Of a stretch of 64,000 bases of DNA, positions 1 through 64,000 are shown piece after piece; positions within the stretch are counted from its first letter, which is position 1, and each line of letters begins with the position of its first letter. Where the stretch lies: positions 10,354,001-10,418,000 of the forward strand of contig NC_086377.1 in assembly GCF_036588685.1 (NCBI RefSeq), read 5' to 3'. The notes beneath the pieces were generated by a model, which was not told the DNA's origin, made no database searches, and saw nothing but the letters and a program-made list of their open reading frames with translations. The DNA comes from Mytilus trossulus (lineage: Eukaryota). The position numbers and the translations under genes are program-made.

Positions 1-2136
1 AAATTAAACAGCATGTGATATTGAAAATTGTATCTGATATTTATTTTTATTAAATGGGAAAATATATATAAAAACAAATTCGTCCCTCTTGTATCCTTTA
101 TTTTATGTTATAAGTGTATAGTGTACGTATACACATTCATGGTACTGTTTTGTTCTAAAATGATACAACCAATTTTAAGGAGCCACTTTATCTATTATAT
201 GAGAATTGATATGGCATTTTGATGTAGCAACATTTTTTTTACATTATTTAAAACATTATGTTATACGGTAAATCTTGCATCTTGTGTTTCATTTTTGCAT
301 TTCATATAGTATGTTATTTTAATTCACAATTGGCGATTCGTACTTATTTATCTTTGATTATAACTAACTTACGTCAACTTGTTTTAGGATGAAAACACCA
401 AAGTGTCTTTCGAAAGTCTTGGTGTATAAAAACAAAAATCACATAAATTATGCAATTCATAATAGAAGTTGTTTGATGTAATGTTGTTATTAAAATAGCT
501 AGGCAATACAATACACACACCCTTTAAATAATGTCACACAGACGTGCGTTACAACTACAAAAGAGTCGGAAGATTTAGAGTATCGTTAAAATGGTATAAC
601 CAGAAATGTTTTAAGCCAATGACATGTGATAACCGGAACAGTTGAAATATTATACCATAAAAAGCATAAGTGAAACAAGTTTACTCAACCTCAGTTCAAC
701 TTACCTTTTGTGGGGTGCAACCTTAGTTCTCAAATGATTTCTTACTTTATAAAGCGACACGTTTAATTCATACACATACTGTTTATCACATTCCAATGTT
801 TGCCATGCTTGATTTATATACTAATTCAATAATGAGACTTCAAAATATTCTACTATCACAACTACCTATGGTATTATTATATTGTCGTTGTTATCTCTCT
901 TTGCTAAATTGTATGCTGTTTTCTGTGGTTAGATTTCTATAAGTTGTCCCTCAAGTTAGTGTAAAGTTAGGCAAACAAATAGGTATGGACATTAGTAATT
1001 TATAATATAAGGTTTTGTTAAAATGGTAGTAGTAGACTATGAGATTATTAAAAAATCATATTAACTTAATGTTGTATCTCAGACAGGTTCGTCTACAAGG
1101 AGACAATGCCATGACAAACAGCAGTATACACAAAAACAAAATCAATATTTTGAGTCATGTTTTATAGCGAAGCGGAACAAATCAGATATTTTCAATTCTT
1201 GAGTTTGACTGTCCCTCTGGTACCTTTCAGCCCTCTTTCATGGATTATACTGCATGAGAGACACTGAAAGCAGAGATGGTGAAATTAAAAAAAGTTTAAC
1301 AACAAATTTATTTGGAGAACTGTTTTAACATATCAACATACTTAAAAATGGTTAAATCAACTCAAGGTCAACTTTATTCGTTTTAGAATTATAATTCAAT
1401 ATTATGCTGTATTTAGTGATTATTTTTTTAATTTTTCAGCGGGTAAGTGTCAAGTAGCAAACAGATAAGTATAGAAAACAATTATATATGCAAGTTATAA
1501 TATAACGATAGTTATACAATGGCGTTAGCAGAGTAGTAAAGTTAAACAATAAACATACTAGTACCATTTTATGAAGAAAATTAGTTTAGAAGTGTTTTAA
1601 ATAAAATTGAGAATGAACATTTGTTAGTAGATAACCATTGTCTGTGTTCTGTTTTTTTTAAAACCCCTTTTATAAAGATTAAAAGTAATATCACAGCGTT
1701 TGTGTTCTTAAATAACAACTCTCAGCTTTTCAAATATGAGAATAAATTGATTAGATTACTTCCGTTTTGAATTTTACCCGAAGTTCAGTATTTATATGAG
1801 TTTACTGTTTGTTAAGTGATTAGACATGATAAGATATTCAAGACTGAGTTTTTAAAGATTGAGCCATGTGCTTGTTTATGTGTACAGCCAGTGTTTTGTA
1901 AACATATGTTGAAAAGAATGTCAGCAATTCTGTATGTTTTGAATTTCCATAATTATTCTGTCTATCAAAAAAAGCAAAACACTTTAAAAATTCAAAACGC
2001 CCGAAGCGCTTATGTTGATAAAAGTACCGTGCACTTGACGAAGCGGAACAAGTCAGACATAATAAGTTCAGATTTTTTGCTACAGTACTATGATTGCTAT
2101 ATGATTACCATAAGCATCATATAAAGAAAACACATA
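1..2136 (+). repeat. Segmental duplication, paralogous to 62119-64000 (tandem gene-scale repeat, ~62 kb offset)
   Basis: Near-continuous direct match by eye, e.g. aaaacagcatgtgatattgaaaattg at 6 and 62124. This copy has an extra ~240 bp around 1580-1818. ORF-track peptides 1816-2124 and 63766-63987 are also similar. Confidence 0.95.
1440..1442 (+). CDS. 3-nt microexon (CGG) of upstream TRIM-like paralog
   Basis: tttttcAG|cgg|GTAAGTgtcaagtagcaaacagataagta; positional paralog of 63542-63544. Confidence 0.75.
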
Positions 2137-2917: not shown

Positions 2918-2923
2918 TTATCG
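2918..2923 (+). CDS. 6-nt microexon (TTATCG; encodes Y-R) of upstream paralog
   Basis: ttttcAG|ttatcg|GTAAGTgttatgtaacagataagtat; in phase 2 gives Y-R immediately before the CSC exon. Confidence 0.72.
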
Positions 2924-3352
2924 GTAAGTGTTATGTAACAGATAAGTATATAGTGATAAGTTTACCAAACAAAAAGAATGAATAGACATCATATAGCGAA
3001 TTGTGTGTGTGGAATTTAAAGAATGGGAAAATATAAGCCAGTTCCAAAAAAAAAGCATTATTATATAAATGTTATAAGAAGCCAGGCGATGTTTTGAATT
3101 CTGTTTTTTTTTAAGAATAATATCAGATAGTGATGATTACACATATTCCATAATTTTCTCCAATACTTGTGTATTGTGACTTATATTAGAACGTTCATAT
3201 CTTAAGCTTTAAATCCAATGAATATCTTATGTTTCATCATTAAATAACTATACATTTATTTTAACTGTTGAACCAGTTAACGCAAAGTTTAATAAGGATG
3301 TCCGAGCGACATGTTTTATATAATTAAGTGTTGTTTTTTTCTCTCATTGTAG

Positions 3353-3367
3353 ATGTTCATGTGGCGG
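3353..3367 (+). CDS. 15-nt exon encoding C-S-C-G-G (second Cys pair of putative Zn ribbon), upstream paralog
   Basis: ttttttctctcattgtAG|atgttcatgtggcgg|GTAAGTactgcagataaa; phase 2-2. Confidence 0.72.
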
Positions 3368-4481
3368 GTAAGTACTGCAGATAAAACATACAATCCATAT
3401 TGCTCTTTGATGACTTTAAGTTCATAGTATGAATTCGTCATACAACGACGTAAAGATTAAAGTATTTATTTAGTTTATCAATTAAATTAAATATGACATG
3501 CGTATTATTGTTTTATTCTTCCATTTAGCATATGATAGGCATTACTTCATGTTATTATGAGTATGTGCATATCACAAGTGAACAGCCTGTAATTCACATA
3601 TTTGTTTTTTTCGTTTTGAACAAAAATTAGGCCGTTAGTCTCTTGTTTTACATTTGTCATTTCGGGGCTCGTTGTTAAAGAAGGTTATGTGACTTATAAT
3701 TTTTTTGTCATTCGGTTTCTCTTGGAGAATTGTCTCGTTTAAAAATCAAACCACATATTCTATGTTATTTTTGCTGCAGAAAAATCTTTTCACTTGCGTT
3801 TCATAGAGACACGATAGAAGACGAATGACATACTTTATGTTTACAAATATATTCTTTAGAAAGACACTTTTCTAATTGTTAAGTTAGTTTTAATGGCTGG
3901 CCTGGCATAATTTGTGTCCATTTAAAACGATTGGTAAGTTATTGTACTTGATATCTACTCACTGAACAAAGAACATTTCAACGTATAAAGTATAAATATA
4001 AGCTATAAAAATCAATAATATACAGAACTAACATGTACTGTTAAAAGGTATCTTAAATACAACTTGAGCAATGGAGTACGATATTCAACATATCGGAAGC
4101 TTTGACTTGTATGAGTTTTGTACAATAAAAACCGAATGTCAACATCAAAACCTACTATTTATCTAGTCAAATCATGACCAAATGCAAGAGCAAGCAACGG
4201 AACTAACATGAACAACAGTCACTCCTGGTTTAGTTAGTATATCAACCAATTAGTCATTAAATAGTTTCAACCAACCACGTCAGGACTAAAAGACGAACAA
4301 TAATTTAGCAAAACATGCACACATTGTTTAGTTTCATGAAGAATAAACCAATTGCAATCAAATCGCATAGAGTACAAATAACAACAAATTTATACTAGTA
4401 CGATTATTTTGGAATGATATAATGTAATTATAGTGCATACATTATAATGATAATATTTGTCCATGGTATTCATGTTTTCAG

Positions 4482-18267: not shown

Positions 18268-18640
18268 CACTTCCCATGTGAACAATCATTGTTCCCATGG
18301 GAAAACATATTGTTCCCACGGGAACAATTATTGTTACCATGGGAAGAAGTATTGTTCCCATGGGGAAAATTAGTGTTCCCATGGGAAAAAATATTGTTCC
18401 CATGGGAAAAGTTTTTTCCCATGGGAAGAAAAGGAGCTTCCTTGGGAAGAAAAATTCCCTTAGGAAATTTAGAACTTACCATGGGAACAAACAATTTACT
18501 TATGTTTCCATGGGAACTTTAAAGTTCCTATGGGAACTCTAAACTTCCCATGGGAAAAGTAATTTTTCCCATGGGAACTTTCAATGTTCCCAAGCGAAAT
18601 TCTAATATTCCCATGGGCATTATCATATTTCCCATGGGAA
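18268..18640. repeat. ~21-bp periodic minisatellite built on palindrome TTCCCATGGGAA
   Basis: Repeated ttcccatgggaa units; explains ORFs 18267-18542. Confidence 0.9.
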
Positions 18641-22665: not shown

Positions 22666-22671
22666 CAAATA
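22666..22671 (+). CDS. 6-nt microexon (CAAATA), second cassette
   Basis: tttctcttttttcAG|caaata|GTAAGTgttatataccaga. Confidence 0.6.
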
Positions 22672-23758
22672 GTAAGTGTTATATACCAGAAGGAAATAAA
22701 ATTAATCAGTGTAAACAATAAGTAGACATGGATAATTTGGTAAATGAAGTTAAAGTATTGATTATTGTGAAATAACAGTCTTACTGAGATAGCAACACTG
22801 CTTTCTGAGAGATAATGTTTTTTTTTTCATTTGGCTTGTTTTTTATGCTATAAAATAAAGAGATGTGGTATAATTGCCAATGACAACTATCAACTAATTC
22901 TTTTGTTTTGATGAACAAAATTTAGTTTTTCTTTTCATTTCTTAGGGTAATATCAAAATACAAAAAACAATCCTAATTCCATCCACTCAGTTATGAATCC
23001 AATGCCTTTTTTTTTAAATTTAATTACGCACTATTTATTGAGTATGTAAACATTAAGCAACACCAAAGCAAACAAGCCAAGTCTGTCAATTTAATTGTAT
23101 TTCTATACTTTGCTAATGACTGTCATTCATACGTATTCAATGACAATGTTTTGATATATCCTTTCATATATCATATATAGCTGAACCTGATTATTTGGAT
23201 AATTGATCAGGAATTGAAACTGAATAAAAAACAAGTGTTTATAATGTACAGCTGCAGCGTAATAACTAGACACTCCATTGTTTTGGGAATGTAAATTGTC
23301 CAAATGATTAAACAACATACAAATGGAATGTTAGTAGTACCAATGCGAAATGTGTTCCAAATAACTGCTTTTAAAAGGAGAAGTCAATATTAAGAAACAT
23401 GGTTTTACTAAAGCTTGTATTATCTAGAAAGCTCAATCGATTAACATTTTTAAACACACACAACCTCAATTAAGATCATCGTTTCAATGCGTATCATCAA
23501 CATTTCATAGCTATCATGATGTTACAGAATGTCTCTCAAAAGGCAGCTAGTAAAAATCACCATGTCGTATAGACTTATATCCAATATGAAAATGTTGTGA
23601 CACGACTTACACAACTGAAAATATATATTTCTTTCACTTCATAAGCTACTTTACTCAAGAAAAACAGCTTTTAAAATGCAAAAATATCAAAACAATTTTC
23701 TGTAACAAATTTCAGAAATTTAAGAAATAATTTTGAGATGATTTTTTTGTTATTTTGG

Positions 23759-23761
23759 AGC
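23759..23761 (+). pseudogene. Dead microexon (AGC) with acceptor read as GG
   Basis: tattttGG|agc|GTAAGTgttatataccaga; same downstream module as 22672 but no AG before a 3-nt exon. Confidence 0.5.
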
Positions 23762-25009
23762 GTAAGTGTTATATACCAGACATATCAGTAAAGAATGATA
23801 AAAAGTAAAATCACAAAAAATACTGTACTTCAAAGGAAATTCAAACGGAAAGTCACTAATAAAATGGCAAAATCAAAATCCCAAACACATCAAACGAATT
23901 GATATTTATTTTCATCTTCCTGATCTGTACAGGTATTTCCATATATAGAAAACAGTAGATTGAAACTGCAACTGTAGTAGATTCTCCGATACACCGAGTT
24001 GAGTTAGAGAATCTATTTTAGAAAGAAGTAGATTCAGATAATATGTTCTTGTTCACAAATCTTCTACTTTTCGATAATTTCTACTCTAGATGTGTATTTT
24101 TCTAATATACGTGATTGCCCTTTATACCATACTTCATGCTTGTCAATAACATGTTGCCCACTTATTGTGTGCTCTGTTTTATTAGATTTTTTTTTATAAT
24201 TGGTTTGTTCGCTTTATGCATGCATGATTTATGTACAAATTCAAATCTGCATACAAGTAAGGATATCGATTTAAGGCCAAAATTGCATTGATCGACTGAG
24301 CATTCAACAGTGTGTTAGTAAGTGCAGCAGTTATCTTTTACTATTTAAAACAATATGTTTCCCCTTCTGGCCAAAAGATGCACGACTGTGAATAAAAATT
24401 GAGAATGGATATGGGGACACTACAACCAATGAATAACGATATTTCTCTACTCGAGACAGTTGCTTTTTTTTTTTATTTAAAGCGCGGTACTTTCCGGGCT
24501 TTTTAGATAATTAAAATGTAATTGTCGAGAGTCAAGAAATATCGTAATTCACAAGTTATAGTGTCGGAATCTGTTTGTCTGATGATTTTATGAAGATCTA
24601 GACATTGGAGTTGACAGAATAGAACTACATGACCAAGTGTAATAACACAAACGTGATCTCACAGAACACACAAACATTGATGTTTCTTCAATAGATATTG
24701 CATTAACGTTAAAATGACAGAGACACAAGGAATATAATATACACCTTGCATTGGAGAAAACATGATATTTGCATAAACCACTGGCTTGACGATTAACGAA
24801 TAAAAAGTTCTATACGCCACATCAAAATATAATCTGTGGATCAAGTAATGTCTCAAAATATTCTACCATCAGTTGATCTATGGATCAGGGAATGTTACAA
24901 AATATACTGTCATTAGTTAATCTGTGAATCAAGTAATGCCACTGTTGTGTACATATTTTATTGTTAAATAGAATGCTGTGATCTATGATTTATGTATTTA
25001 TGTTTTCAG

Positions 25010-25012
25010 CAG
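25010..25012 (+). CDS. 3-nt microexon (CAG) with GC donor, second cassette
   Basis: tgttttcAG|cag|GCAAGTgtcgagtattaaacagataaat; AG|GCAAGT is the usual GC-AG donor context. Confidence 0.55.
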
Positions 25013-25044
25013 GCAAGTGTCGAGTATTAAACAGATAAATTAAG

Positions 25045-39476: not shown

Positions 39477-40243
39477 ATGGCACAGGCAGCCTCTAAAACA
39501 TGTGAGATATGTATAAGTGCTCCAGGATCCCAATACTGTTTGGAGTGTGAACAAAACTTTTGTGAAAATTGTAAAACTTTTCATAGTAGGCAGAAGATAT
39601 CAAAAACTCACCAGTTCCAGTCTTCCTCTGATGTAATCCCGGAGGGTAAATCGAAATGTAAGGACCACAATGAAGACTTCAGTTTTGTATGCAAAACATG
39701 TGACGTAGTAGTGTGCAGTAGTTGTGTGACTGGCAGTCACACAGGGCATGCTTTTTCCAAGCTTCTGGACAGCATTAAACAGTTAAAGGAGAAGAACACA
39801 ACATACCTACGTATAAGAGTACAACAGTCAACACAAAACATGAAGCAGATAGAAAAAGGTATAAAGGAATTTGATGTCAAGGTGGAAGGAGTAGTCAAAG
39901 CTATTACAAAAGAAGGTACACAACTCAAGGCTATGGTTGATAAATGTGTTGCAGAGATGATTTCATCGGTCAATGATCAATCTAGGAGAGAAAAGGACAA
40001 ATTGACAAAGATCATGGCAGATACTAGAATGGATTTGAAGGCAGGAAGCAATTTAGACATGCAGATTGATGAACTCGACAAGATCAGAAACGATGGTAAT
40101 TTGTTACAGTCTTTACAGAAGCTTACAGATGACAATGCAAAGCTGACGATAAAGCCAATTCCCGAGTTTCCGAACATAAGGTATACTGCGAAGTCCGCAA
40201 CAGATAACGACGTTAAACAACTGTTTGGTAACTACATACTCAG
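39477..40243 (+). CDS. RING-less TRIM-like protein, coding exon 1 (B-box1, B-box2, coiled-coil)
   Basis: CEIC..CLEC..CENC..H..H and CKDH..CKTC..CSSC..HTGH followed by a helical heptad region; donor ctcAG|GTAATT in phase 2. Confidence 0.93.
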
Positions 40244-40475
40244 GTAATTCTACTAAAAATGACTGACAATTTTGTGGGCGTAATACATGCTTTAATATAA
40301 CCATAGTATCTAAATGAGACACGCTTTTTTTTTGCGAAATAAAAATTATGTTGTATTCTGAAATATAAACTTATGTCTTGAAATAATATGACAGACGAAG
40401 GAGTGATAATTCATGAAATACAAATATGCGTTCATTACACATCTATTGTTTAATATTATGGATTCAACATGTGAT

Positions 40476-42164
40476 GAAACCAAATTTCTTGGTTTACTTT
40501 TCGATAAAAAGTTAACCTTTCTACCCCATATCAAAATGTTAAAAGCGAGATGTTTAAAAGCTTTAGATATTTTAAAAGTTGTCGGCAGCACTGACTGGGG
40601 TGCTGATCGCAACATTTTACTTAATTTATATAGATCTCTTGTTAGATCGAAACTAGATTATGGCTCTATAGTGTATGGCTCTGCAAGGAAGTCCTACATA
40701 CAGATTCTCGATGCTGTGCATCACCAAGGTTTGCGTCTCTGTCTTGGCGCATTTAAAACCTCACCAGTTGAGAGTCTGTATGTAGAGGCTGATGAGCACT
40801 CACTCACTGACAGACGTTTGAAGCTTGGACTTCAATATGCTGTCAAACTAAAAGCCCATTCAGATAATCCTGCCTACAGCTGTGTTTTTAATCCGATTTA
40901 TGAAGATATTTTTGCAAAACATGAAAATAAAATTCCTCCGTTAGGTTTACGTTTAAAACCACATTTAGCTTCTTTTGATTTAAAATCTGTTGCTCAAGTT
41001 CAAACTTGCAAATGTCCTCCATGGGAACTTCCCAAACCAAAAATGATATTTGATCTCCGTGAACACAATAAAAATAAAACAAATCCTCTTTTAATTCAGC
41101 AACACTATGCTGAAATTAAAGCCGATTATCTAGATTTTTCAACTGTATATACTGATGGATCAAAAGATGGTGATAGAGTTGCATCTGCTGCTGTCTTCAG
41201 GGACAGAGCTGCAACCCTCCGTTTACCATCTGATGCATCCATCTTTACTGCTGAAGCAGAAGCAATAATTTTGGCTTTGAAATTTATTGCTTCTTCAGAT
41301 AAATCCAAATTTATTATATGTTCGGATTCACTTTCATGTTTACAAGCTATACGAAATACTAAAATTAAAAACCCAACAATCCTGAAAATTTTATATGTAA
41401 TGAGGAATTTAAAAATTCTTCTGAAAGAAATAATATTTTTATGGGTTCCGAGTCATGTTGGAATCCTTGGAAACACAGCTGTAGACCTTGAGGCAAAGAA
41501 TGCCCTGGGTGACCCTCTATCTAACTGTGATATACCATATACTGATTTTAAATCTAATATTAGAGAATATGTTTTTAATATATTGAAAAATAAATGGAGT
41601 AAAAAAGATGATAATAAATTGCATGAAATTAAACCTAGTTTAGGCAAACCTTTTGATAATATTATGTGCAGAAAAGATCAGTGTGTTATTACTAGATGTC
41701 GTATTGGTCATACTAGAATAACACACGAGTATCTTTTAAAAAATGAAGATGAACCACAATGTGTTCCTTGCAACTGCAAGTATACTATTAAACATGTTTT
41801 AATTAATTGTATTGACTTTGCTGATATTCGTAAGAAGCATTTCAATGTCAATAATATGTATGATTTATTTAATGATGTTCCATTTACAAATATTGTTGCT
41901 TTTTTAAAAGAAATTGGAATTTATTATAAAATATAAAAATGTTATTATATTTAAATCGATTTTAATTTTTATCACGTTATTTTACTGTTGATTTTTAATT
42001 GTATATACTCAATTTGCTTTAGTCAATAATTTTAGTATACTGAAGGACTTTTTGTCTTATTTTAAAATATGCTTTAAATTGTAAAAATATTCGAATTAGC
42101 TCTCGCCGCGATATAGCCTTTTTGTGCTAATGCGGCGTAAAGCAACCAACAATCAATCAATCAA
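40476..42164 (+). mobile_element. 5'-truncated I-group (Nimb/I-like) LINE, copy 1, in intron 1
   Basis: ORF with end of RT region, RNase H (YTDGSK..AEAEAI..SDSLS..WVPSHVGILGN..D) and CxxC..H..C knuckle; (TCAA)n tail; 12-bp TSD TCAACATGTGAT (40464-40475, 42165-42176). Confidence 0.95.
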
Positions 42165-42737: not shown

Positions 42738-42794
42738 TGAAATGCGTACACAACAAATCATGAACAAAGAAAGAGAATTGCCTTCATCCAAGAG
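42738..42794 (+). CDS. TRIM-like gene exon 2 (57 nt; EMRTQQIMNKERELPSSK)
   Basis: tttatcttttatcAG ... aagAG|GTAGGG; open and symmetric phase 2-2, continuing the exon 1 frame. Confidence 0.78.
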
Positions 42795-48205: not shown

Positions 48206-48271
48206 TGATTACAAACAGGATGTGATACCAAAGGAGCAAGGAAAATGCCTGTACAGATGTGTCAAGTGTCG
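48206..48271 (+). CDS. TRIM-like gene exon 3 (66 nt; DYKQDVIPKEQGKCLYRCVKC, first Cys pair)
   Basis: tgttgcttattatAG ... tgtCG|GTAAGT; open, phase 2-2. Confidence 0.82.
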
Positions 48272-50656: not shown

Positions 50657-53574
50657 TGTAGGCAAGCCCGACGAACATCCTGGAAAAAATTTGTCTCGGG
50701 GATTACATCTCGCACTCCGATGACAAAAGTTTGGAATATGGTAAATAAAATAAAAGGTAAAAATTCTAAAGCCACTGTAAAACATTTGAAAGACGGCAAT
50801 ACTTTATTAACATCTGAAAAGGATATTGCCAACAAACTTGGTGAAACTTTTGCAAAGTCTTCTTCTTGTAACAACTACAGGGAAGACTTTAAAAAAGTTA
50901 AAAAACAAAAAGAAAAAATTAAATTAAACTTTAAATCAAAAAATGGTGAAAATTATAATAAACTATTTTCTCTTGAAGAACTTAAAACATCTCTGTCAAA
51001 AGCCCATGATACAGCTTGTGGGCCTGATAATATTCACTACCAACTCTTAAAACACTTGCCAGATTCCTCGCTAGAAGCTCTCTTGCAGCTCATGAATAAC
51101 ATCTGGGAATCTGGTGATTTACCATCAATCTGGAAGCTTGCAACCGTCGTGCCTATTCCAAAACCAAGTAAAGATCATACGGATCCTATTAATTATCGAC
51201 CAATTGCTCTTACCAGTTGTGTCTGTAAAACACTCGAACGGATGGTCAATGATCGACTTGTTTGGTTCCTGGAATCCAATGGGCTATTAGCCAATATCCA
51301 GTGTGGATTCCGACAGGGTCGCAGTACTCTTGATCATCTTGTTCGATTCGAATCATTTGTCCGTAATGGTTTTGCGAAAAATGAGCATGTGGTGTCGGTC
51401 TTTTTCGACCTTGAGAAGGCCTATGATACTGCATGGAAATATGGTATTTTAAAAGATTTATTTGATATGGGGTTGAAAGGCAATATGCCTAATTTTATTT
51501 CTAATTTTCTCTCTAACAGACAATTTAATGTTAGAGTTTATCGACCATGTCTGATCTGTATGATCAAGAGATGGGTGTCCCTCAGGGCAGTATTTTATCT
51601 GTAACATTATTTAGTCTTAAAATTAACAGCCTTGTTGAAGTTTTAAAAAGTAATATTGAAGGTTCATTGTACGTTGATGATTTTTTAATATGTTACAGAG
51701 GCAAAAATATGAATAACATAGAAAGACAATTACAACTATGTCTTGGAAGAATTGAAAAATGGGCCTCGGAAAATGGTTTTAAATTTTCCACGTCAAAAAC
51801 GGTCGGGATGCATTTTTGTAACAAAAGAAAATTGCATCTTGATCCAGAACTAACTTTGTACGGCAACCCAATTAAAATGGTTGATGAAACCAAATTTCTT
51901 GGTTTACTTTTCGATAAAAAGTTAACCTTTCTACCCCATATCAAAATGTTAAAAGCGAGATGTTTAAAAGCTTTAGATATTTTAAAAGTTGTCGGCAGCA
52001 CTGACTGGGGTGCTGATCGCAACATTTTACTTAATTTGTATAGATCTCTTGTTAGATCGAAACTAGATTATGGCTCTATAGTGTATGGCTCTGCAAGGAA
52101 GTCCTACATACAGATTCTCGATGCTGTGCATCACCAAGGTTTGCGTCTCTGTCTTGGCGCATTTAAAACCTCACCAGTTGAGAGTCTGTATGTAGAGGCT
52201 GATGAGCACTCACTCACTGACAGACGTTTGAAGCTTGGACTTCAATATGCTGTCAAACTAAAAGCCCATTCAGATAATCCTGCCTAAAGCTGTGTTTTTA
52301 ATCCGATTTATGAAGATATTTTTGCAAAACATGAAAATAAAATTCCTCCTTTAGGTTTACGTTTAAAACCACATTTAGCTTCTTTTGATTTAAAATCTGT
52401 TGCTCAAGTTCAAACTTGCAAATGTCCTCCATGGGAACTTCCCAAACCAAAAATGATATTTGATCTCCGTGAACACAATAAAAATAAAACAAATCCTCTT
52501 TTAATTCAGCAACACTATGCTGAAATTAAAGCCGATTATCTAGATTTTTCAACTGTATATACTGATGGATCAAAAGATGGTGATAGAGTTGCATCTGCTG
52601 CTGTCTTCAGGGACAGAGCTGCAACCCTCCGTTTACCATCTGATGCGTCCATCTTTACTGCTGAAGCAGAAGCAATAATTTTGGCTTTGAAATTTATTGC
52701 TTCTTCAGATAAATCCAAATTTATTATATGTTCGGATTCACTTTCATGTTTACAAGCTATACGAAATACTAAAATTAAAAACCCAACAATCCTGAAAATT
52801 TTATATGTAATGAGGAATTTAAAAATTCTTCTGAAAGAAATAATATTTTTATGGGTTCCGAGTCATGTTGGAATCCTTGGAAACACAGCTGTAGACCTTG
52901 AGGCAAAGAATGCCCTGGGTTACCCTCTATCTAACTGTGATATACCATATACTGATTTTAAATCTAATATTAGAGAATATGTTTTTAATATATTGAAAAA
53001 TAAATGGAGTAAAAAAGATGATAATAAATTGCATGAAATTAAACCTAGTTTAGGCAAACCTTTTGATAATATTATGTGCAGAAAAGATCAGTGTGTTATT
53101 ACTAGATGTCGTATTGGTCATACTAGAATAACACACGAGTATCTTTTAAAAAATGAAGATGAACCACAATGTGTTCCTTGCAACTGCAAGTATACTATTA
53201 AACATGTTTTAATTAATTGTATTGACTTTGCTGATATTCGTAAGAAGCATTTCAATGTCAATAATATGTATGATTTATTTAATGATGTTCCATTTACAAA
53301 TATTGTTGCTTTTTTAAAAGAAATTGGAATTTATTATAAAATATAAAAATGTTATTATATTTAAATCGATTTTAATTTTTATCACGTTATTTTACTGTTG
53401 ATTTTTATTTGTATATACTCAATTTGCTTTAGTCAATAATTTTAGTATATTGAAGGACTTTTTGTCTTATTTTAAAATATGCTTTAAATTGTAAAAATAT
53501 TCGAATTAGCTCTCGCCGCGATATAGCCTTTTTGTGCTAATGCGGCGTAAAGCAACCAACAATCAATCAATCAA
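50657..53574 (+). mobile_element. 5'-truncated I-group LINE, copy 2, in intron 3 (frameshift plus premature stop)
   Basis: RT motifs (YRPIALTS, QCGFR, FFDLEKAYD, GVPQGS, YVDD), RNase H, knuckle; frameshift near 51540; TAA at 52285-52287; (TCAA)n tail; 12-bp TSD TCATATTTAAAA (50645-50656, 53575-53586). Confidence 0.95.
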
Positions 53575-53960: not shown

Positions 53961-53981
53961 AAAGGAAATGAGAACTGATAT
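53961..53981 (+). CDS. TRIM-like gene exon 4 (21 nt; (R)KEMRTD)
   Basis: tctgtttcatctttcAG|a AAG GAA ATG AGA ACT GAT AT|GTAAGT; phase 2-2. Confidence 0.8.
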
Positions 53982-54988: not shown

Positions 54989-54991
54989 ATT
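54989..54991 (+). CDS. 3-nt microexon ATT
   Basis: attttcAG|att|GTAAGTgtcaagtagaaaacagataagtat. Confidence 0.75.
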
Positions 54992-55321
54992 GTAAGTGTC
55001 AAGTAGAAAACAGATAAGTATAGCGTCTTATTGTATATGTTGGTTTGTTTGTTTGTGTTGGTGTATACAGATATTTATATAAATTAGTTAGGTAGCTTTA
55101 CAATTTGAAATAATCTCAATCACTATGAGGAAAAATGAGAAAACAAATTAAACTCATAGTAATGACTTTACTATTGAATTATCTGACAGAACACTCGATA
55201 TTCTCAAAATGTTGTACTTTTATTGCATTACTTTTTCAATTAAATCCAATGACGATTTTTTGTTTTTAACTGTATGATTTGCTGTTAAAAAAATTGATTA
55301 TTTTGACTGGTTTTTGTTGAG

Positions 55322-55324
55322 CGT
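55322..55324 (+). pseudogene. Decayed CGT microexon
   Basis: ttgttGAG|cgt|GTAACT: acceptor CAG>GAG and donor +5 G>C relative to intact copies. Confidence 0.55.
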
Positions 55325-56258
55325 GTAACTGTCAAGTAACAATCAGAAAGGTATAATTATATATACTGTAGTTCATTATACAAAGAGAGTAATACAAAGA
55401 TGTTAAGTAAAACAATAAACATGTCATGATTGTGATGTATGGTAGCACCCGTTATGTCTACAAAAGAGGCGGAAGATACCAAGAGACATCTAAACGCATA
55501 ACGTTATAATTTAGTACCCAGAACGACAAAAAGACAATCAAATGAATACAAAATACAACAATCAGGATTGCGTTGTTTTCTATATGTATCTTCATCTTCA
55601 TTACATAACGTGTGATTAATTCAGTAATAAAAGTAAAACAATACACATGTCATTAACGTGATATATGTGAGACTCGCGGGTCGTCTACAAATGAGGCGAA
55701 CGATACCAAAAAGACATTCAAATGCATTGGTCGAATATAAACTGACACCGCCATGGCTAAATCCTAGTGCTACAAAAACACCAACAACAGTCGTCAAACA
55801 AATTGTGTGATTTCATGCACTGATTAATACATTTACCGTCATTGGAAATGCTGAAAGCCGAAATGTATAAACCTGTATAGTTAACAAACCTGTTGTCAGT
55901 TTGTTTTAGATTTATGAGTTTGACTGTCCCTTTGGTATCTTTCGTCTCTCCATTGAAGTATATGTCCTTGGAAAAAACACATCAATATGATTATATCGAC
56001 CTGACGTCCATTTCTTTTTTAGATTTCTTAACAAATTATAAATGTACAAAGCGCCAAATCACACAACTTTTACATTGCAATAACTGGCATCATTATATCT
56101 TATTGACTATACTTTTCAAAAATATGACAAAAACAAACTGTCATCTACAAATGTTCTCCTATCACATTACTACTTATTCCAATAATTATATTGGAGATAA
56201 CTTAATTCTTTTCTAAATGGTATGCTGTATTTAATGGTTATTAATTTGATTGTTTCAG

Positions 56259-56264
56259 ATCGAT
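56259..56264 (+). CDS. 6-nt microexon ATCGAT
   Basis: tgtttcAG|atcgat|GTAAGTgtcaagtagcatacagataagta. Confidence 0.75.
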
Positions 56265-56815
56265 GTAAGTGTCAAGTAGCATACAGATAAGTAATTTACA
56301 CTTATATAATATGCACTTTAAAATGTGATAACATGTATATAACGGTGTTAGAAGAGTTGCAAAGTTAAACAATAAACATACCATTGTAAGAGATAAATTT
56401 TCTCAGTACCGCTGTTCGAAAGTCGTATATCGAATGAGAGAAAAAAAGTAGGTGTCACGTAGAAAACAGATAAGTATAGCGTATAAAGATATATGTAGGT
56501 CATTATATAAAGATATCTGTACCAATTAGTTAAGTAATAGTGAACATTAGATAAACCTTTAAAATGATGTATGGTAGACGTGAGCATAGCTCTAAAATTT
56601 GAAATCATCAACATAACTATTAGGCAAGATGAGAAAACAGAATCTAACTCATAGTAATGACTTTACTTTTGAATTATCTGATAGAACACTCAATAGTCTC
56701 GAAATGATGTACTTTTATTGCATTGCTTTTTTAATTAAATCCAATAACGATTTTTGCTTTTGCCTGAATGATTTGCTGTTCACTATAATGATTAATTTGA
56801 CTGATTTTTGTTCAG

Positions 56816-56818
56816 CGT
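56816..56818 (+). CDS. 3-nt microexon CGT
   Basis: tttttgttcAG|cgt|GTAAGTgtcaagtaacaaacagaaatgtat. Confidence 0.7.
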
Positions 56819-57325
56819 GTAAGTGTCAAGTAACAAACAGAAATGTATAATTATATAAACTGTAGTTCATTATATAAAGAGAGTAATACAAATATGTTAA
56901 GTAAAACAATGAGCATGCGTATAATATGATGTATGATAGCCCTGCGTTATGTTTACAAGAGAGGCGGGAGATACCAAGAGACATTCAAACGCTTAACGTT
57001 ATAATTTAGTACGACGAAAAGACAATCAAATGAATACAAAAAAACAAACAATAATATGATTATATCGACCTGACGTCACTTTTGTTTAGGTTTCTTAACA
57101 AATTATAAATGTACAAAGCGCCAAATCACACAACTTTTACATTGCAATAACTGGCATCATTATATCTTATTGACTATACTTTTCAAAAATATGACAAAAA
57201 CAAACTGTCATCTACAAATTTTCTCCTATCACATTACTATTTATTCCTATAATTATATTGGAGACAACTTAATTCTTTTCTGAATGGTATGCTGTATTTA
57301 ATGGTTATTTATTTGATTGTTTCAG

Positions 57326-57328
57326 GCG
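57326..57328 (+). CDS. 3-nt microexon GCG
   Basis: tgtttcAG|gcg|GTAAGTgtcaagtagcatacagataagta. Confidence 0.72.
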
Positions 57329-57879
57329 GTAAGTGTCAAGTAGCATACAGATAAGTAATTTACACTTATATAATATGCACTTTAAAATGTAATAATATGT
57401 ATATAAAGGTGTTAGAAGAGTTGCAAAGTTAAACAATAAACATGCCATTGTGAGAGATAAATTTTCTCAGTACCGCTGTTCGAAAATCGTATATCGAACG
57501 AGAGAAAACAAGTAGGTGTCACGTAGAAAACAGATAAGTATAGCGTATAAAGATATATGTAGGTCATTATATAAAGATATCTGTACCAATTAGTTAAGTA
57601 ATAGTGAACATTAGATAAACCTTTAAAATGATGTATGGTAGACGTGAGCATAGCTCTAAAATTTGAAATCATCAACATAACTATTAGGCAAGATGAGAAA
57701 ACAGAATCTAACTCATAGTAATGACTTTACTTTTGAATTATCTGATAGAACACTCAATAGTCTCGAAATGATGTACTTTTATTGCATTGCTTTTTTAATT
57801 AAATCCAATAACGATTTTTGCTTTTGCCTGAATGATTTGCTGTTCACTATAATGATTAATTTGACTGATTTTTGTTCAG

Positions 57880-57882
57880 CGT
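57880..57882 (+). CDS. 3-nt microexon CGT
   Basis: tttttgttcAG|cgt|GTAAGTgtcaagtaac. Confidence 0.7.
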
Positions 57883-58389
57883 GTAAGTGTCAAGTAACAA
57901 ACAGAAATGTATAATTATATAAACTGTAGTTCATTATATAAAGAGAGTAATACAAATATGTTAAGTAAAACAATGAGCATGCGTATAATATGATGTATGA
58001 TAGCCCTGCGTTATGTTTACAAGAGAGGCGGGAGATACCAAGAGACATTCAAACGCTTAACGTTATAATTTAGTACGACGAAAAGACAATCAAATGAATA
58101 CAAAAAAACAAACAATAATATGATTATATCGACCTGACGTCACTTTTGTTTAGGTTTCTTAACAAATTATAAATGTACAAAGCGCCAAATCACACAACTT
58201 TTACATTGCAATAACTGGCATCATTATATCTTATTGACTATACTTTTCAAAAATATGACAAAAACAAACTGTCATCTACAAATTTTCTCCTATCACATTA
58301 CTATTTATTCCTATAATTATATTGGAGACAACTTAATTCTTTTCTGAATGGTATGCTGTATTTAATGGTTATTTATTTGATTGTTTCAG

Positions 58390-58392
58390 GCG
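58390..58392 (+). CDS. 3-nt microexon GCG
   Basis: tgtttcAG|gcg|GTAAGTgtcaagtagc. Confidence 0.72.
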
Positions 58393-58943
58393 GTAAGTGT
58401 CAAGTAGCATACAGATAAGTAATTTACACTTATATAATATGCACTTTAAAATGTAATAATATGTATATAAAGGTGTTAGAAGAGTTGCAAAGTTAAACAA
58501 TAAACATGCCATTGTGAGAGATAAATTTTCTCAGTACCGCTGTTCGAAAATCGTATATCGAACGAGAGAAAACAAGTAGGTGTCACGTAGAAAACAGATA
58601 AGTATAGCGTATAAAGATATATGTAGGTCATTATATAAAGATATCTGTACCAATTAGTTAAGTAATAGTGAACATTAGATAAACCATTAAAATGATGTAT
58701 GGTAGACGTGAGCATAGCTCTAAAATTTGAAATCATCAACCTAACTATTAGGCAAGATGAGAAAACAGAATCTAACTCATAGTAATGACTTTACTTTTGA
58801 ATTATCTGACAGAACACTCAATAGTCTCGAAATGATGTACTTTTATTGCATTGCTTTTTTAATTAAATCCAATAACGATTTTTGCTTTTGCCTGAATGAT
58901 TTGCTGTTCACTATAATGATTAATTTGACTGATTTTTGTTCAG

Positions 58944-58946
58944 CGT
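58944..58946 (+). CDS. 3-nt microexon CGT
   Basis: tttttgttcAG|cgt|GTAAGTgtcaagtaac. Confidence 0.7.
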
Positions 58947-59456
58947 GTAAGTGTCAAGTAACAAACAGAAATGTATAATTATATATACTGTAGTTCATTA
59001 TATAAAGAGAGTAATACAAATATGTTAAGTAAAACAATGAGCATGCGTATAATATGATGTATGATAGCCGTGCGTTATGTTTACAAGAGAGGCGGGAGAT
59101 ACCAAGAGACATTCAAACGCTTAACGTTATAATTTAGTACGACGAAAAGACAATCAAATGAATACAAAAAAAACAAACAATAATATGATTATATCGACCT
59201 GACGTCATTTTTATTTGGTTTCTTAACAAATTATAAATGTGCAAAGCGCCAAATCACACAACTGCTACTTTTCAATACAGTAACTGGCATCATTATATTT
59301 TATTGAATATACTTTTCAAAAATATGACAAAAACAAACTGTCATCTACAAGTTTTCTCCTATCACGTTACAATTTATTCAATTAATGTATTGAAGATAAC
59401 TTAATTCGTTGTTAATGGTATGCTGTATTATATGGTTATTTATTTGATTATTTCAG

Positions 59457-59459
59457 TTG
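59457..59459 (+). CDS. 3-nt microexon TTG
   Basis: tatttcAG|ttg|GTAAGTttcaagtagcaaacagataagtat. Confidence 0.72.
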
Positions 59460-59994
59460 GTAAGTTTCAAGTAGCAAACAGATAAGTATAACATGCACTT
59501 CAAAATGAATTAATTTGAATATAATGGTATTAGTAGAGTTGCAAAGTTAAACAAAGAACATAACATTTAAGTGAGAAATATTCTCAATACCGCTGTTCGA
59601 AAGTCGTTTATCGAATGAGAGAAAACAAGTGAGTGTCAAGTAGAAAACATACAGGTATAGCGTATTATTGTGTATGTAGGTCATTATATAAAGGTATTTG
59701 TACCAATTAGTTAAGTACTAGTGAACATTAAATAGCCCATTAAAATGATGTATGGAAGACGCGATCATAGCTTTAAAATGTGAAATCATCAAAATAACTA
59801 TGAGGCAAGATGAGAAAACAAAATAAAACTCATACTAATGACTACTATTGAATTATCTGACAGAAGACTCGATAGTCTCAAAGTATTGTACTTTTATTGA
59901 ATTACTTTTTTAATATAATCCAAAGACGATCTTTGCTTTTGCCTGAATGATTTGCTGTTCACTATAATGATTAATTTGACTGATTTTTGTTCAG

Positions 59995-59997
59995 CGT
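59995..59997 (+). CDS. 3-nt microexon CGT
   Basis: tttttgttcAG|cgt|GTAAGTgtcaaggaacaaacagaa. Confidence 0.65.
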
Positions 59998-60858
59998 GTA
60001 AGTGTCAAGGAACAAACAGAAAAATATAATTATATATACTGTAGCTCATTATATAAAGAGAGTAATACAAGTATGTGAAGTTAAACAATAAGCCTGCTTA
60101 TAATATGATATATGATAGCCGTGCGGTGTGTCTACAAAAGAATCAGAAGATACCATGAGACATTCAAATGCATAACGTAATTGTACCAAGAACGACAAAA
60201 ATACAATCAAATGATTACAAAATACAACAATCAGGATTGTGTTGTTTTCTATATATCTACATTACATAAAGTGTTATAAGTGAAGTAAAGTTAAACAATA
60301 AACATACCATAAATATAATATATGTGAGACTCGTTCCGTCTAATAAAATGGCGAAAGATATCAAAGAGAGATTCAACAGCATTGGTCGGATATAAACTTG
60401 CACCGCTATGGCTAAATCCTAGTGAGACATACAAATAAACAACAGTTTATAAAACAAAACGTAATCTGATGTTATTTCCTGTCTTCTAGATTAATCTTCA
60501 TTGAAAATACAAAATCAAAAATGGGTAAAACTTATGACATATACTAACCAAAACTGTTGAAGTTATTTGGCATCATTATTTAATTTAAATTGAATATATG
60601 ATTGTCCTTTTAAATTACCGATTCTTGATAAGTCTTCACCAGATAGTGACGTTCAAAGACATGGTATCCTGCTCAGCCCTGTCATAGAATTAATTGTCTC
60701 CTTTGTATTAGTCAATCAGGAGTATAATAGAAGAAACTGTCATTTAACAAAATGTTTTTTTTATATTTTTATTACGTATTCAACTAATTCCATTAAAGTT
60801 GGTTAATTCATTGCAGAATTGTATGCTGTAATTTATAATTATTATTATTTGTTTACAG

Positions 60859-60861
60859 CTT
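60859..60861 (+). CDS. 3-nt microexon CTT
   Basis: tttgtttacAG|ctt|GTAAGTtttaagtagaaaacagataagtat. Confidence 0.75.
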
Positions 60862-62064
60862 GTAAGTTTTAAGTAGAAAACAGATAAGTATAGCGTACAT
60901 TTACATAGACAATTTATAATGTAAGGCTTTTGATGCAATGGTGGTGGTAACATAGTTAAGTAAAACAATAATCCCACAACTTACATGACGTATCTCAGAT
61001 GCACGCTCCATCTTTAAAGAGGAGGAAGATAATAGAGAGACATTCAAAATCATTAGTAAAATGTAAACTAAACAAATACCATGGCAAAAATATAAAGAGA
61101 CAAACAACAGTAAAAAAAAACCCCAAAAGACAAGGTAATTTTAGAGACGATGAAAGCCAATACAGTTTTAAATAAAAATAGAGAACATACACATAACTGG
61201 TTGAACTATCACTAGGACAACTTTTTTTGAGGATGTTAGTTAAGAGTCTAGGGTTAACGTTTGTTACATATCCGATAATTTGTCAAACCTTCATAGGATT
61301 GTCTTGAAAACTTTGGCAGAAGATATTTATGATTCAGAAATAAGGTTTTTAAAATATATGTTCATTTGCAGTCTTTTTCTTATAGATGGTTTTGAATTAA
61401 TTTAGTTTTACTTGCAATATTTTTAAACCTGCATTAATTTTTATGAAACTTGGGCTTTATTAATACTGTATAATATCGTTTTGTATACAATGTGAAATAT
61501 CTGATAAATCCATAAATGAACTCATCATAGATAGTTATTAAAACTTTGCTTATCAGATAGTCTTTGTTGTTAGTGTTTTATCGTAAATAATCCAATTCTA
61601 AGGTTTTTTTTCTCGCCAATTAATATATTACAGAGTGACGTAATTGATAAAAGTAAGAACTCGTTTGTATTGGTTTTTTCTAATTTGATTGTTATATAAT
61701 TAACAACTGGATACCATAGAATAAAAAAACATACAGAAGTATTTTGTTATCATGATTGTTATAATTTCATAATATATAATCAATGAGGTTTCAATATCCA
61801 TTTACAATTATTATGGGAGAAAAATATTCATTTTTATCATTTAATTTGCTTTTTATTTGTATATTTTTACTTTTTTGTGATAGCTCTCACATTTAGGAAA
61901 CTACAGTATCTTCTAAATATGATTAACATTTCCAGACAAAATGCTGAACTTAATATGCACAAGTAAAACGTTGTATCTGATGTTTTTAGATGAGTATTTT
62001 CCCTTTCGTTGTTCTCTCAAACTATTCATTCGATCTTAATTGAATGTATATTTCTTTTTTTCAG

Positions 62065-62070
62065 GGGCAT
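62065..62070 (+). CDS. 6-nt microexon GGGCAT
   Basis: tttctttttttcAG|gggcat|GTAAGTaccaaccatataagtat. Confidence 0.7.
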
Positions 62071-62118
62071 GTAAGTACCAACCATATAAGTATGTTGTGA
62101 TAAGTTTAAACAAAATAA

Positions 62119-64000
62119 AAAATAAAACAGCATGTGATATTGAAAATTGCATCTGATATTTTAGTAAATGGGAAAATATATTAAAAAAAAGTTCGTCCCT
62201 CTTTTATCCTTTAGTTTATGGTATAAGTGTATAGTGTACGTACACACATTCATGGTACTGTTTTGTTCTAAAATGATACAACCCATTTTAAGGAGCCACG
62301 TTATATATTATATGAGAATTGATATGGCATTTTGATGAAGCAACATTTTTTTACATTATTTAAAACGTTATGTTATACAGTAAATCTTGCATCTTGTGTT
62401 TCATTTAGGTACTTTATATAGTATGTTATTTTAATTCACAATTGTCGATTCGTACTTATTTATCTTTGATTATAACTACCCTACGTCAACTTGTTTTAGG
62501 ATGAAAACACCAAAGTGTCTTTCGAAAGTCTTGGTGTATAAAAACAAAAATCACATAAATTATGCAATTCATAATAGAAGTTGTTTGATGTAATGTTGTT
62601 ATTAAAATAGCTAGGCAATACAATACACATACCATTTAAATAATGTCACACAGACGTGCATAACGACTACAAAAGAGTCGGAAGATTTAGAGTATCGTTA
62701 AAAATTGTAAAACCAGAAATGTTTTAAGCCAATGACATATGATAACCGGAACAGTTGAAATATTAGACCATAAAAAGCATAAGTGAAACAAGTTTACTCA
62801 ACCTCAGTTCAACTTAACTTTTGTGTGGTGCAACCTTAGTTCTCAAATGATTTCTAAATCTATAAAGCGACACGTTTAATTCATACACATACTGTTTATC
62901 ACATTCCAATGTTTGCCATGCTTGATTTATATACTAATTCAATAATGAGACTTAAAAATAATCTACTATCACAACTACCTATGGTATTCTTATATTGTCG
63001 TTGTTATCTCTCTTTGCTAAATTGTATGCTGTTTTCTGTGGTTATATTTTTATAAGTTGTCCCTCAAGTTAGTGTCAAGTTAGGCAAACACATAGGTATG
63101 GACATTAGTAATTTATAATATAAGGTTTTGTTAAAATGGTAGTAGTCGACTATTAGATTAATAAAAAAAATCATATCAACTTAATGTTGTATCTCAGACA
63201 GGTTCGTCTACAAGGAGGCAATGCCATGACAAACAGCAGTATACACAAAAACAAAATCAGCATTTTGAGTCATGCGTTATAGCGGAGCGAAATAAATCAG
63301 ACATTTTCAGTTTGACTGTCTGGTACCTTTCAGCCCTCTTTCATAGATTATACTGCATAAGAGATACTGAAAGCAAGGATAGTGAAAGCCAAAAATTATA
63401 AAAACAAATGTATTTGAAGAACTACATTAACATATCAACATATATAAAAATGGTTAAATCAACTCAAAGTCAACGTTATTCGTTTTTGAATAATAATTCA
63501 ATATTATGCTGTATTCAGTGATTATTTATTTATGTTTTCAGCAAGTAAGTGTCAAGTAGCAAACAGATAAGTATAGAAAACAATTATATATGCAATTTAT
63601 AATATAACGATAGTTATACAATGACGTCAGTAAAGCAGTAAAGTTAAACAATAAACACGTGTACTAGTACCATTTTATGAAAAGAAATATTTATATAAGA
63701 CATGATAAGATATTCGAGACAGAATTTTTAAAGCTGAGACGAATGTTTGTTTATGTGTACAGCCCGTGTTTTGTATACATATGTTGAAAAGAATGTCGGC
63801 AATTCTATACGTTTTGCATTTCCAAAATTATTCTGTCTTTCCAAAAAAGCATAACACTTTAAAAATTCAAAACGCCCAAAGCGCTTTTTGGGTTAAAGTA
63901 ACGTGCACTTTTACGAAGCGGATCAAGTCAGACATAATTTGTTCAGATTTTTTGCCACATTACAATGATTACCATAAGCATCATTGAAACAAAACACATA
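62119..64000 (+). repeat. Segmental duplication, paralogous to 1-2136
   Basis: Direct match to the window start. Confidence 0.95.
63542..63544 (+). CDS. 3-nt microexon CAA
   Basis: tgttttcAG|caa|GTAAGTgtcaagtagcaaacagataagtat; paralog of 1440-1442. Confidence 0.75.

Follow-up and report, generated by a model that had tools for sequence, protein, structure and literature searches.

Gene structure and microexon units of the cluster

We analysed a 64,000-nucleotide window of the Mytilus trossulus RefSeq assembly (contig NC_086377.1, here C5, 10,354,001-10,418,000; feature positions are numbered within the window). The window lies inside a tandem cluster of TRIM-like B-box genes: at least 38 copies of the first exon lie on C5 between 8.1 and 10.6 Mb, nearly all on the + strand, and an older cluster at about 53% identity lies on contig C11. 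Exon 1 of the gene in the window (39477..40243, +) encodes two B-boxes and a coiled coil (Pfam zf-B_box, ANCHR-like B-box and TRIM_CC), is 99% identical to an M. trossulus RefSeq protein (P0001) and ends in phase 2 (..CTC AG|gtaatt); the gene is annotated only up to this exon. Using tblastn with the tails of RefSeq proteins and inspection of the exon boundaries, we placed exon 2 (42738..42794, +; 57 nt, ..EMRTQQIMNKERELPSSK..) and exon 3 (48206..48271, +; 66 nt), which holds the first cysteine pair (..YRCVKC..). Exon 4 (53961..53981, +; 21 nt, ..KEMRTD + AT) follows, and its homologue is used in the RefSeq models of the paralogues P0015, P0004 and P0019. A candidate chain of 3- and 6-nt exons then runs ATT, ATCGAT, GCG, GCG, TTG, CTT, GGGCAT and CAA, and the gene continues beyond the window with TAGACA, a 15-nt exon (second cysteine pair) and the last exon. 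In this family such chains encode a hypervariable loop between the two cysteine pairs.

A 30-nt module begins at the donor of these units. At 54992..55021 (+), behind the 3-nt microexon ATT (54989..54991, +; 'first' class, inferred from the homologous units ACG, ATG and GTT that three RefSeq models use), it consists of the donor GTAAGT (54992-54997), a spacer (54998-55010) and a U1-like, non-cleavable site, CAG|ATAAGTAT (55011-55021), hereafter the decoy. Each full copy reads Y-tract, CAG, three variable bases, then GTAAGTGTCAAGTAG(A/C)AAACAGATAAGTAT. The CAG of the decoy starts at intron position +20 and its pseudo '+1' A is at +23, that is, about 22 nt after the real donor and 25 nt after the acceptor. 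In the window, CAGATAAGTAT (up to 1 mismatch) occurs 13 times on the + strand and 0 times on the - strand against 2.2 expected, and the donor-proximal 15-mer GTAAGTGTCAAGTAG (up to 3 mismatches) occurs 23 times against 2.0 expected. All of the sites listed in a sequence-only reading of the window exist, and the observation made there is confirmed.

Full modules sit directly behind AG-NNN at donor positions 1443, 54992, 57329, 58393, 59460, 60862 and 63545, and at 56265 the exon is 6 nt. These units are ATCGAT (56259..56294, +; ..CAGATAAGTAA), which is the first copy of a 1064-bp tandem repeat, GCG (57326..57358, +; homologous GCG units are used in P0019), GCG (58390..58422, +), TTG (59457..59489, +; GTAAGTTTC..CAGATAAGTAT; the homologous TTG unit is used in P0019), CTT (60859..60891, +; GTAAGTTTTAAG..CAGATAAGTAT; homologous CTT units are used in P0025) and CAA (63542..63574, +). 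The unit CGG (1440..1472, +), in the tail of the upstream paralogue, is identical to a unit used in P0015. Three modules (56265, 57329 and 58393) end in ...AAGTAA rather than ...AAGTAT. Much of the local recurrence at 56-60 kb reflects the 1064-bp repeat, the copies of which are 97-99% identical and are not independent. Shortened modules follow two 6-nt exons: TTATCG (2918..2949, +; GTAAGTGTTATGTAA-CAGATAAGTAT, identical to a unit used in P0015), with the decoy 4 nt closer to the donor at 2924, and GGGCAT (62065..62093, +; GTAAGTACCAAC-CATATAAGTAT, homologues of which are used in P0015 and P0004), with the decoy 7 nt closer to the donor at 62071. In both cases a second GATAAGT follows, 5 nt later in the GGGCAT unit.

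Other units depart from this design. The CGT class (donors at 55325, 56819, 57883, 58947 and 59998) has a good acceptor and donor but a degraded decoy: the candidate at 55322..55354 (+; AG CGT GTAACT..) carries CAGAAAGGTAT, and that at 56816..56848 (+), repeated at 57880, 58944 and 59995, carries CAGAAATGTAT. Conversely, class B units (56448..56477, +; repeated at 57512 and 58576, and decayed at 59629) have no acceptor and a GTAGGT donor but an intact CAGATAAGTAT; the flank of this class is homologous to the used CGA unit of the P0025 gene. In the upstream paralogue, the 15-nt exon with the second cysteine pair (C-S-C-G-G; 3353..3389, +) is followed only by a degenerate remnant, GTAAGTACTG-CAGATAAAAC, at 3368. 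A relic tail cassette (22666..25042, +) has three units (donors at 22672, 23762 and 25013) that have lost or degraded the decoy; no decoy is left at 22672, and one unit has a GC donor.

Use, conservation and distribution of the module

The microexons are real. For four paralogues, we translated chains of AG/GT-flanked 3- and 6-nt pieces and compared them with the RefSeq proteins; the chains reproduce exactly 19, 18, 19 and 8 residues of P0015, P0004, P0019 and P0025, respectively. All 24 tiny exons in these chains carry AT(A/G)AGT at +16 to +23, and the models use the upstream GTAAGT, not the decoy. By contrast, the five CGT-class candidates that lie between them have a good acceptor and a GTAAGT donor but a decoy degraded to CAGAAATGTAT or similar; all five are skipped, and inserting them breaks the protein match. 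Whether weakening the site causes skipping is left undecided by this contrast, as the CGT class is a single lineage that also differs elsewhere and counts as one natural experiment (at class level, about 8 used against 1 skipped). Use of the microexons of the window itself rests on homology to the RefSeq models of paralogues, with units homologous flank for flank. Assembled RNA contigs (Logan) mapped to the region from position 61,900 to 3.9 kb past the window end, which holds four microexons, the last exon and the 3' UTR, fell only on repeat-like stretches and none lay on any exon, which was uninformative; no joined spliced sequence was used as a query. A protein search with the tail alone found no transcript-derived proteins beyond the RefSeq models. 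Larger exons behave differently: the 15-nt exon is followed by a stable degenerate remnant (CAGATAAAAC), the 21-nt exon 4 by nothing similar (gtaagtatgatctacg..), and the older C11 paralogues, which have no module within 8 substitutions, encode the loop in 30- and 27-nt exons without any such motif (seen in P0058).

The sequence-only reading had named lack of conservation relative to adjacent intron among old copies as grounds for rejecting a function, and we found the opposite. Between nine old unit classes, the mean pairwise identity is 1.00 for the donor (+1 to +6), 0.86 for the spacer (+7 to +19), 1.00 for CAG (+20 to +22) and 0.89 for the core (+23 to +30), compared with 0.42 at +31 to +60, 0.32 at +61 to +90, 0.38 at -60 to -21 and 0.30 for the exon; with gapped alignment the flanks reach only 0.47. 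Within a class, paralogues have diverged too little to separate motif from flank, and the signal of selection comes only from the old classes. We next considered 62 units not ascertained through the motif, from six whole gene tails and the neighbours of 30 motif-centred loci. Each of the 51 non-CGT units among them carries AT(A/G)AGT. In the 20 distinct collinear 30-mers, decoy positions +1, +2, +4, +5 and +6 have no extra allele, whereas the spacer has 1.23 extra alleles per site, CAG 1.33 and +7/+8 1.5, and the only core change is +3 A>G. CAG is less conserved than ATAAGT, and the motif varies only where real donors vary (-3 to -1, +3 A/G, +7 and +8), the tolerance profile of a genuine donor, which here varies only at +3 and +6. 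With about 1.28 extra alleles per soft site, five empty sites have a probability of about 0.002, although this is a rough Poisson estimate and the alleles are not fully independent. The hexamer also keeps its place when the spacer changes by indels (6-nt exon units) or diverges to about 50% identity (in one subfamily, L054, the locus of which was chosen through the motif).

A second ground for rejection named in advance, that the motif occurs mostly away from acceptors as part of a transposon, did not hold either. In a genome-wide search of the kind the sequence-only reading had proposed, GTAAGT-N6-14-CAGATAAGT occurs 208 times forward and 27 times reverse, against controls of 23 and 15, and all 30-mers with up to 1 mismatch lie in C5:8.14-10.36 Mb on the + strand. 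Intron flank anchors at 0 mismatches are likewise confined to C5, with a few 1-mismatch exceptions on C7 and C12, and a four-copy hit on C3 is an unrelated 100-nt tandem repeat with no acceptor. The module is thus specific to this cluster and tied to acceptors rather than dispersed on both strands independently of one gene family. Terminal inverted repeats and target-site duplications were not examined, although the variable triplet codes for protein, which argues against a target-site duplication. In the window, ATAAGT overall shows no strand bias (41 against 40) but is donor-linked 10 against 1.

Predicted pairing with U1 and possible functions

The U1 genes of M. trossulus form a tandem array of at least 42 copies on C14 and begin ATACTTACCTGG, with the canonical 5' end AUACUUACCUG. 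CAGAUAAGUAU pairs with this end at 10 of 11 positions, with a predicted duplex of -7.3 kcal/mol, and the pseudo +1 lies at +16 to +23 in 70 of 70 non-CGT units. The site cannot itself be cut, as A occupies +1 in every copy. The decoy is nevertheless a decent rather than a superior U1 site: it averages -6.9 kcal/mol against -9.2 for real donors and is the stronger of the two in only 5 of 70 units. Degraded CGT-class sites fall to -1.6 to -5.7 kcal/mol.

The best-supported reading, which we hold tentatively, is that the 30-nt sequence is a selectively maintained intronic splicing element of a Mytilus-specific cluster of TRIM-like genes, the 3' part of which, (C)AG|AUAAGUAU, is a 5'-splice-site mimic that docks U1. 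In a 3-nt exon the acceptor AG and the donor GU would be too close for U2AF and U1 to sit on them together. U1 bound at the dead site would define a pseudo-exon of about 25 nt, so that the acceptor can be recognised and the upstream intron removed; the genuine donor would then sit at the end of a long exon and be used, and the 22 extra bases would never enter the mRNA. Our analysis establishes that the element exists, is tied to tiny exons that are really used, evolves like a splice site and matches the mussel's own U1, whereas binding of U1 snRNP or U1-70K, enhancement of inclusion and the order of intron removal are inferences for which no RNA or binding data were obtained. Several points weigh against this reading: the decoy is the weaker predicted U1 partner in 65 of 70 units, the spacer is conserved too in 3-nt units, so that another factor could be the reader, and units without an acceptor (class B and one in the P0019 gene) still carry intact decoys. 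In addition, a 25-nt pseudo-exon is still short for classical exon definition, and two U1 particles 22 nt apart probably cannot bind together. The interpretation offered in the sequence-only reading, that the decoy recruits U1 at a workable distance, with the real donor used afterwards and possibly recursively, is therefore partly supported, with the corrections that the whole module and not only the decoy is conserved in 3-nt units and that the mechanism, presented there as a dedicated one, has precedents.

Two alternatives are less likely. The motif could be a fossil of the ancestral unit, carried along by tandem duplication and homogenised by gene conversion, without a function of its own: all units plainly derive from one ancestral cassette, young paralogues show equally conserved flanks, dead units keep intact decoys and the module is confined to one gene cluster. 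However, conservation has sharp edges at about -20 and +30 with a hypervariable exon in between, five splice-site-critical positions do not vary while the spacer varies and takes indels, and the motif decays in the skipped CGT class, after larger exons and in the relic cassette; conversion tracts would not stop repeatedly at the same 30-nt boundary. Equally unlikely, in our view, is an element read by something other than U1, such as an RNA-binding protein that recognises AAGU repeats (GUAAGU..CAAGUAG..AUAAGUAU), or a silencer or insulator that sets which microexons are included. Conservation of the whole module in 3-nt units, including CAAGTAG, the second GATAAGT in 6-nt-exon units and the modest strength of the decoy are consistent with this, and known microexon enhancers bind proteins (SF1 on G-rich elements, SRRM4 on UGC). 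Yet the allowed variation matches the 5' splice-site consensus position by position, including +3 A/G and free -3 to -1 and +7/+8, and the spacer, including CAAGTAG, is replaced in 6-nt units and in the L054 subfamily while ATAAGT stays.

The remaining readings are very unlikely. Pairing of the module with the conserved upstream region (TATGCTGTA, U-rich tract) could present the microexon in a loop, and some units can pair UAUGCUGUA with UAUAGCGUA, or UUAUUUAUUUG with CAGAUAAGUAU, in predicted folds; across 16 units, however, fold z-scores range from -3.2 to +2.0 with no common structure, the partners differ between classes and AU-rich pairing of this kind is expected by chance. An intronic cluster of GATA-factor sites (AGATAAG / TGATAAG) is suggested by CAGATAAGT and GTGATAAGT, which fit WGATAR, but used units carry CATATAAGT, CAAATAAGT or CAGATGAGT (TATAAG, AATAAG or GATGAG in place of the GATA core), which break GATA but keep the splice-site-like core, and the motif has a strict strand and a fixed distance from a donor. 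The 22 nt from GT to CAG are too short to be an intron for a metazoan spliceosome.

Relation to known splicing systems

Intronic U1 sites that enhance exon definition are known. In human PAH exon 11, a natural U1 site at about +14 to +32 enhances definition of the exon, its loss causes skipping and adapted U1 rescues it (Martinez-Pizarro et al. 2018, PMC5933811); engineered exon-specific U1 snRNAs exploit the same effect (PMC3349419). As in PAH, a U1-complementary site here lies a few tens of nucleotides into the intron (+20 to +30) and is not itself used for splicing; it is proposed to strengthen definition of the upstream exon, and distance to the real donor matters. In PAH, however, it is a single cryptic GT site behind a normal-sized exon, shown by mutation and U1-70K binding, whereas the mussel site is dead at +1 and is repeated behind every 3-6-nt exon of a chain and across at least 38 paralogues, with about 185 copies above chance and nothing shown experimentally.

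The proposed mechanism also follows the logic of recursive splicing in Drosophila and vertebrates, in which a strong acceptor and a GTAAGT donor lie almost juxtaposed and a cryptic RS-exon, flanked by a downstream donor, must be recognised before the ratchet-point donor is used and the cryptic exon is discarded (PMC8605326, PMC6224609). Ratchet points leave 0 nt in the mRNA, whereas here acceptor and donor are not directly juxtaposed and the 3 or 6 coding nt between them appear in the RefSeq proteins; RS-exons are about 50 nt with a functional GT donor that competes, whereas the pseudo-exon here is about 25 nt and its 'donor' is dead. A donor-like site does lie 22 nt downstream, but with A at +1 and so short a pseudo-exon this does not tell whether such an exon is recognised first, and splicing intermediates or sawtooth read patterns were not measured. 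Microexons depend strongly on the U1-associated proteins PRP-40 and RBM-25 (bioRxiv 10.64898/2026.09.14.751627).

Downstream intronic enhancers of vertebrate microexons (the G-rich/SF1 enhancer of the 6-nt cTNT exon and the c-src N1 downstream control sequence) are likewise conserved elements just after the donor of a very short exon, needed because the exon cannot hold enhancers or be bridged normally, but they are G-rich or UGCAUG motifs bound by proteins, not a 5' splice-site mimic, and serve single alternative exons of 6-18 nt, not arrays of constitutive-looking 3-nt exons. U1 also binds sites that do not undergo splicing in the RSV negative regulator of splicing and the ATM intronic splicing processing element; those decoys repress splicing or a cryptic exon, whereas the association here is with inclusion. 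On paper the mussel module works like the PAH, exon-specific U1 and recursive-splicing systems, and it differs in three ways: the disabled +1, the very short distance and the systematic reuse behind arrays of one- and two-codon exons.

How a spliceosome recognises an exon of three bases has long been unresolved, and known microexon enhancers are protein-binding elements studied on single exons. This family offers about two hundred natural replicates of one compact design (acceptor, 3-6 coding bases, strong donor, spacer and dead donor), together with natural controls in the form of skipped units with a decayed motif, larger exons without it, dead copies and an older paralogue cluster that encodes the same loop in normal exons. 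If the dead donor is a U1 dock, it would show that non-productive U1 binding can be a routine, evolvable solution to the steric limit on exon size, and would link microexon splicing mechanistically to recursive splicing. It is possible, although we consider it somewhat less likely than not, that mussels have evolved a dedicated cis device for one-codon exons, in which a catalytically dead 5' splice site about 22 nt behind each 3-6-nt exon docks U1 in a recursive-splicing-like step with a disabled RS-exon donor. Such a device would let a gene family build, duplicate and diversify a hypervariable, possibly immune-related, protein loop one amino acid at a time, and would explain how this loop can be assembled codon by codon.

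Sequence elements flanking the microexons

A second conserved element, TATGCTGTA(T), lies about 27–36 nt upstream of most microexon acceptors (window positions 1405–1440, 56225–56258, 57290–57325, 59420–59456 and 63505–63541, and homologous units in the family loci L035–L051), whereas the CGT class, the skipped candidate units, has TTGCTGTTC further upstream. A UGC-containing motif just upstream of the acceptor is the hallmark of SRRM3/4 (eMIC)-dependent microexons in bilaterians. On the downstream side, the units with 6-nt exons carry a second GATAAGT 5 nt after the decoy (the non-cleavable U1-like site), in the arrangement ..ATAAGTAT-atagt/gttgt-GATAAGTTT (window positions 2950–2962 and 62094–62106; also loci L037 and L049–L051), so that these units carry two dead donor-like sites.

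Comparison of window positions 54989–63544 with loci L035–L037 and L049–L051 revealed that the 3-nt exons are as different between homologous units as random triplets (30% identity), while their flanks are 86–100% identical. Nearly every copy has a different triplet (CTC, CCC, GTT, GCG, CCG, AAT, GCA, CGG, CTG, CGA, CTT and CAA, among others), in contrast to the unused CGT triplet, which is invariant in all 11 copies. In the skipped CGT class (window positions 55325–55354, 56819–56848 and 59998–60027; loci L036, L049 and L050), the two most variable positions of the first 40 intron bases are exactly the former decoy positions +3 and +4 (AAATGT, AAAGGT, AAAAAT, AAAATT, AAAACA and AAAAGT). This could reflect relaxed constraint, selection to silence the unit or slippage in an A run.

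Repeats in and around the gene cluster and the U1 genes

Two copies of a non-LTR retrotransposon (with reverse transcriptase and RNase H ORFs) sit in introns 1 and 3 of the TRIM-like gene (window positions 40413–41936 and 50720–53346). The two copies share identical 300-nt stretches (positions 40472–40771 equal 51882–52181 at 100%), indicating that they are recent insertions or a duplication. Between the two gene copies lie 21-bp tandem arrays of palindromic units (TTCCCATGGGAA.. and TTTAGCATAAGCTAAA..; window positions 18271–18640, 12245–12622 and 20258–20671), whose nature is unknown. Past the window end, short, high-depth contigs from all four RNA(-like) runs lie on three intron stretches of locus L048 (L048:2162–2361, 2789–2883 and 3783–3843, corresponding to about window positions 64,061 to 65,742) at 90–95% likeness with many loose ends; these look like fragments of an abundant expressed repeat rather than transcripts of this gene.

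Elsewhere in the M. trossulus assembly (G000), a tandem repeat of about 100 nt (ACCGTAAGTATA..CAGATAAGTC..GGTACAGTA..) on contig C3 (G000:C3:6,957,148–6,960,732; loci L056 and L057) matches the donor-plus-decoy pattern by chance; there is no acceptor in front of it and it is unrelated to the TRIM-like family. The U1 snRNA genes form a tandem array of at least 42 copies on contig C14 (G000:C14:50,057,228–50,217,257) with a period of about 1.3 kb, all scoring 146.7–148.2 bits against Rfam RF00003.

Annotation of the family in other Mytilus species

Many annotated family members in other Mytilus species (proteins P0009, P0014, P0020, P0028 and P0030, from M. californianus and M. edulis) stop just after exon 4, with tails such as ..KEERSDYAM or ..KEEITDM. 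This looks like read-through into the intron, and the microexon chains are therefore probably missed by annotation in those genomes.
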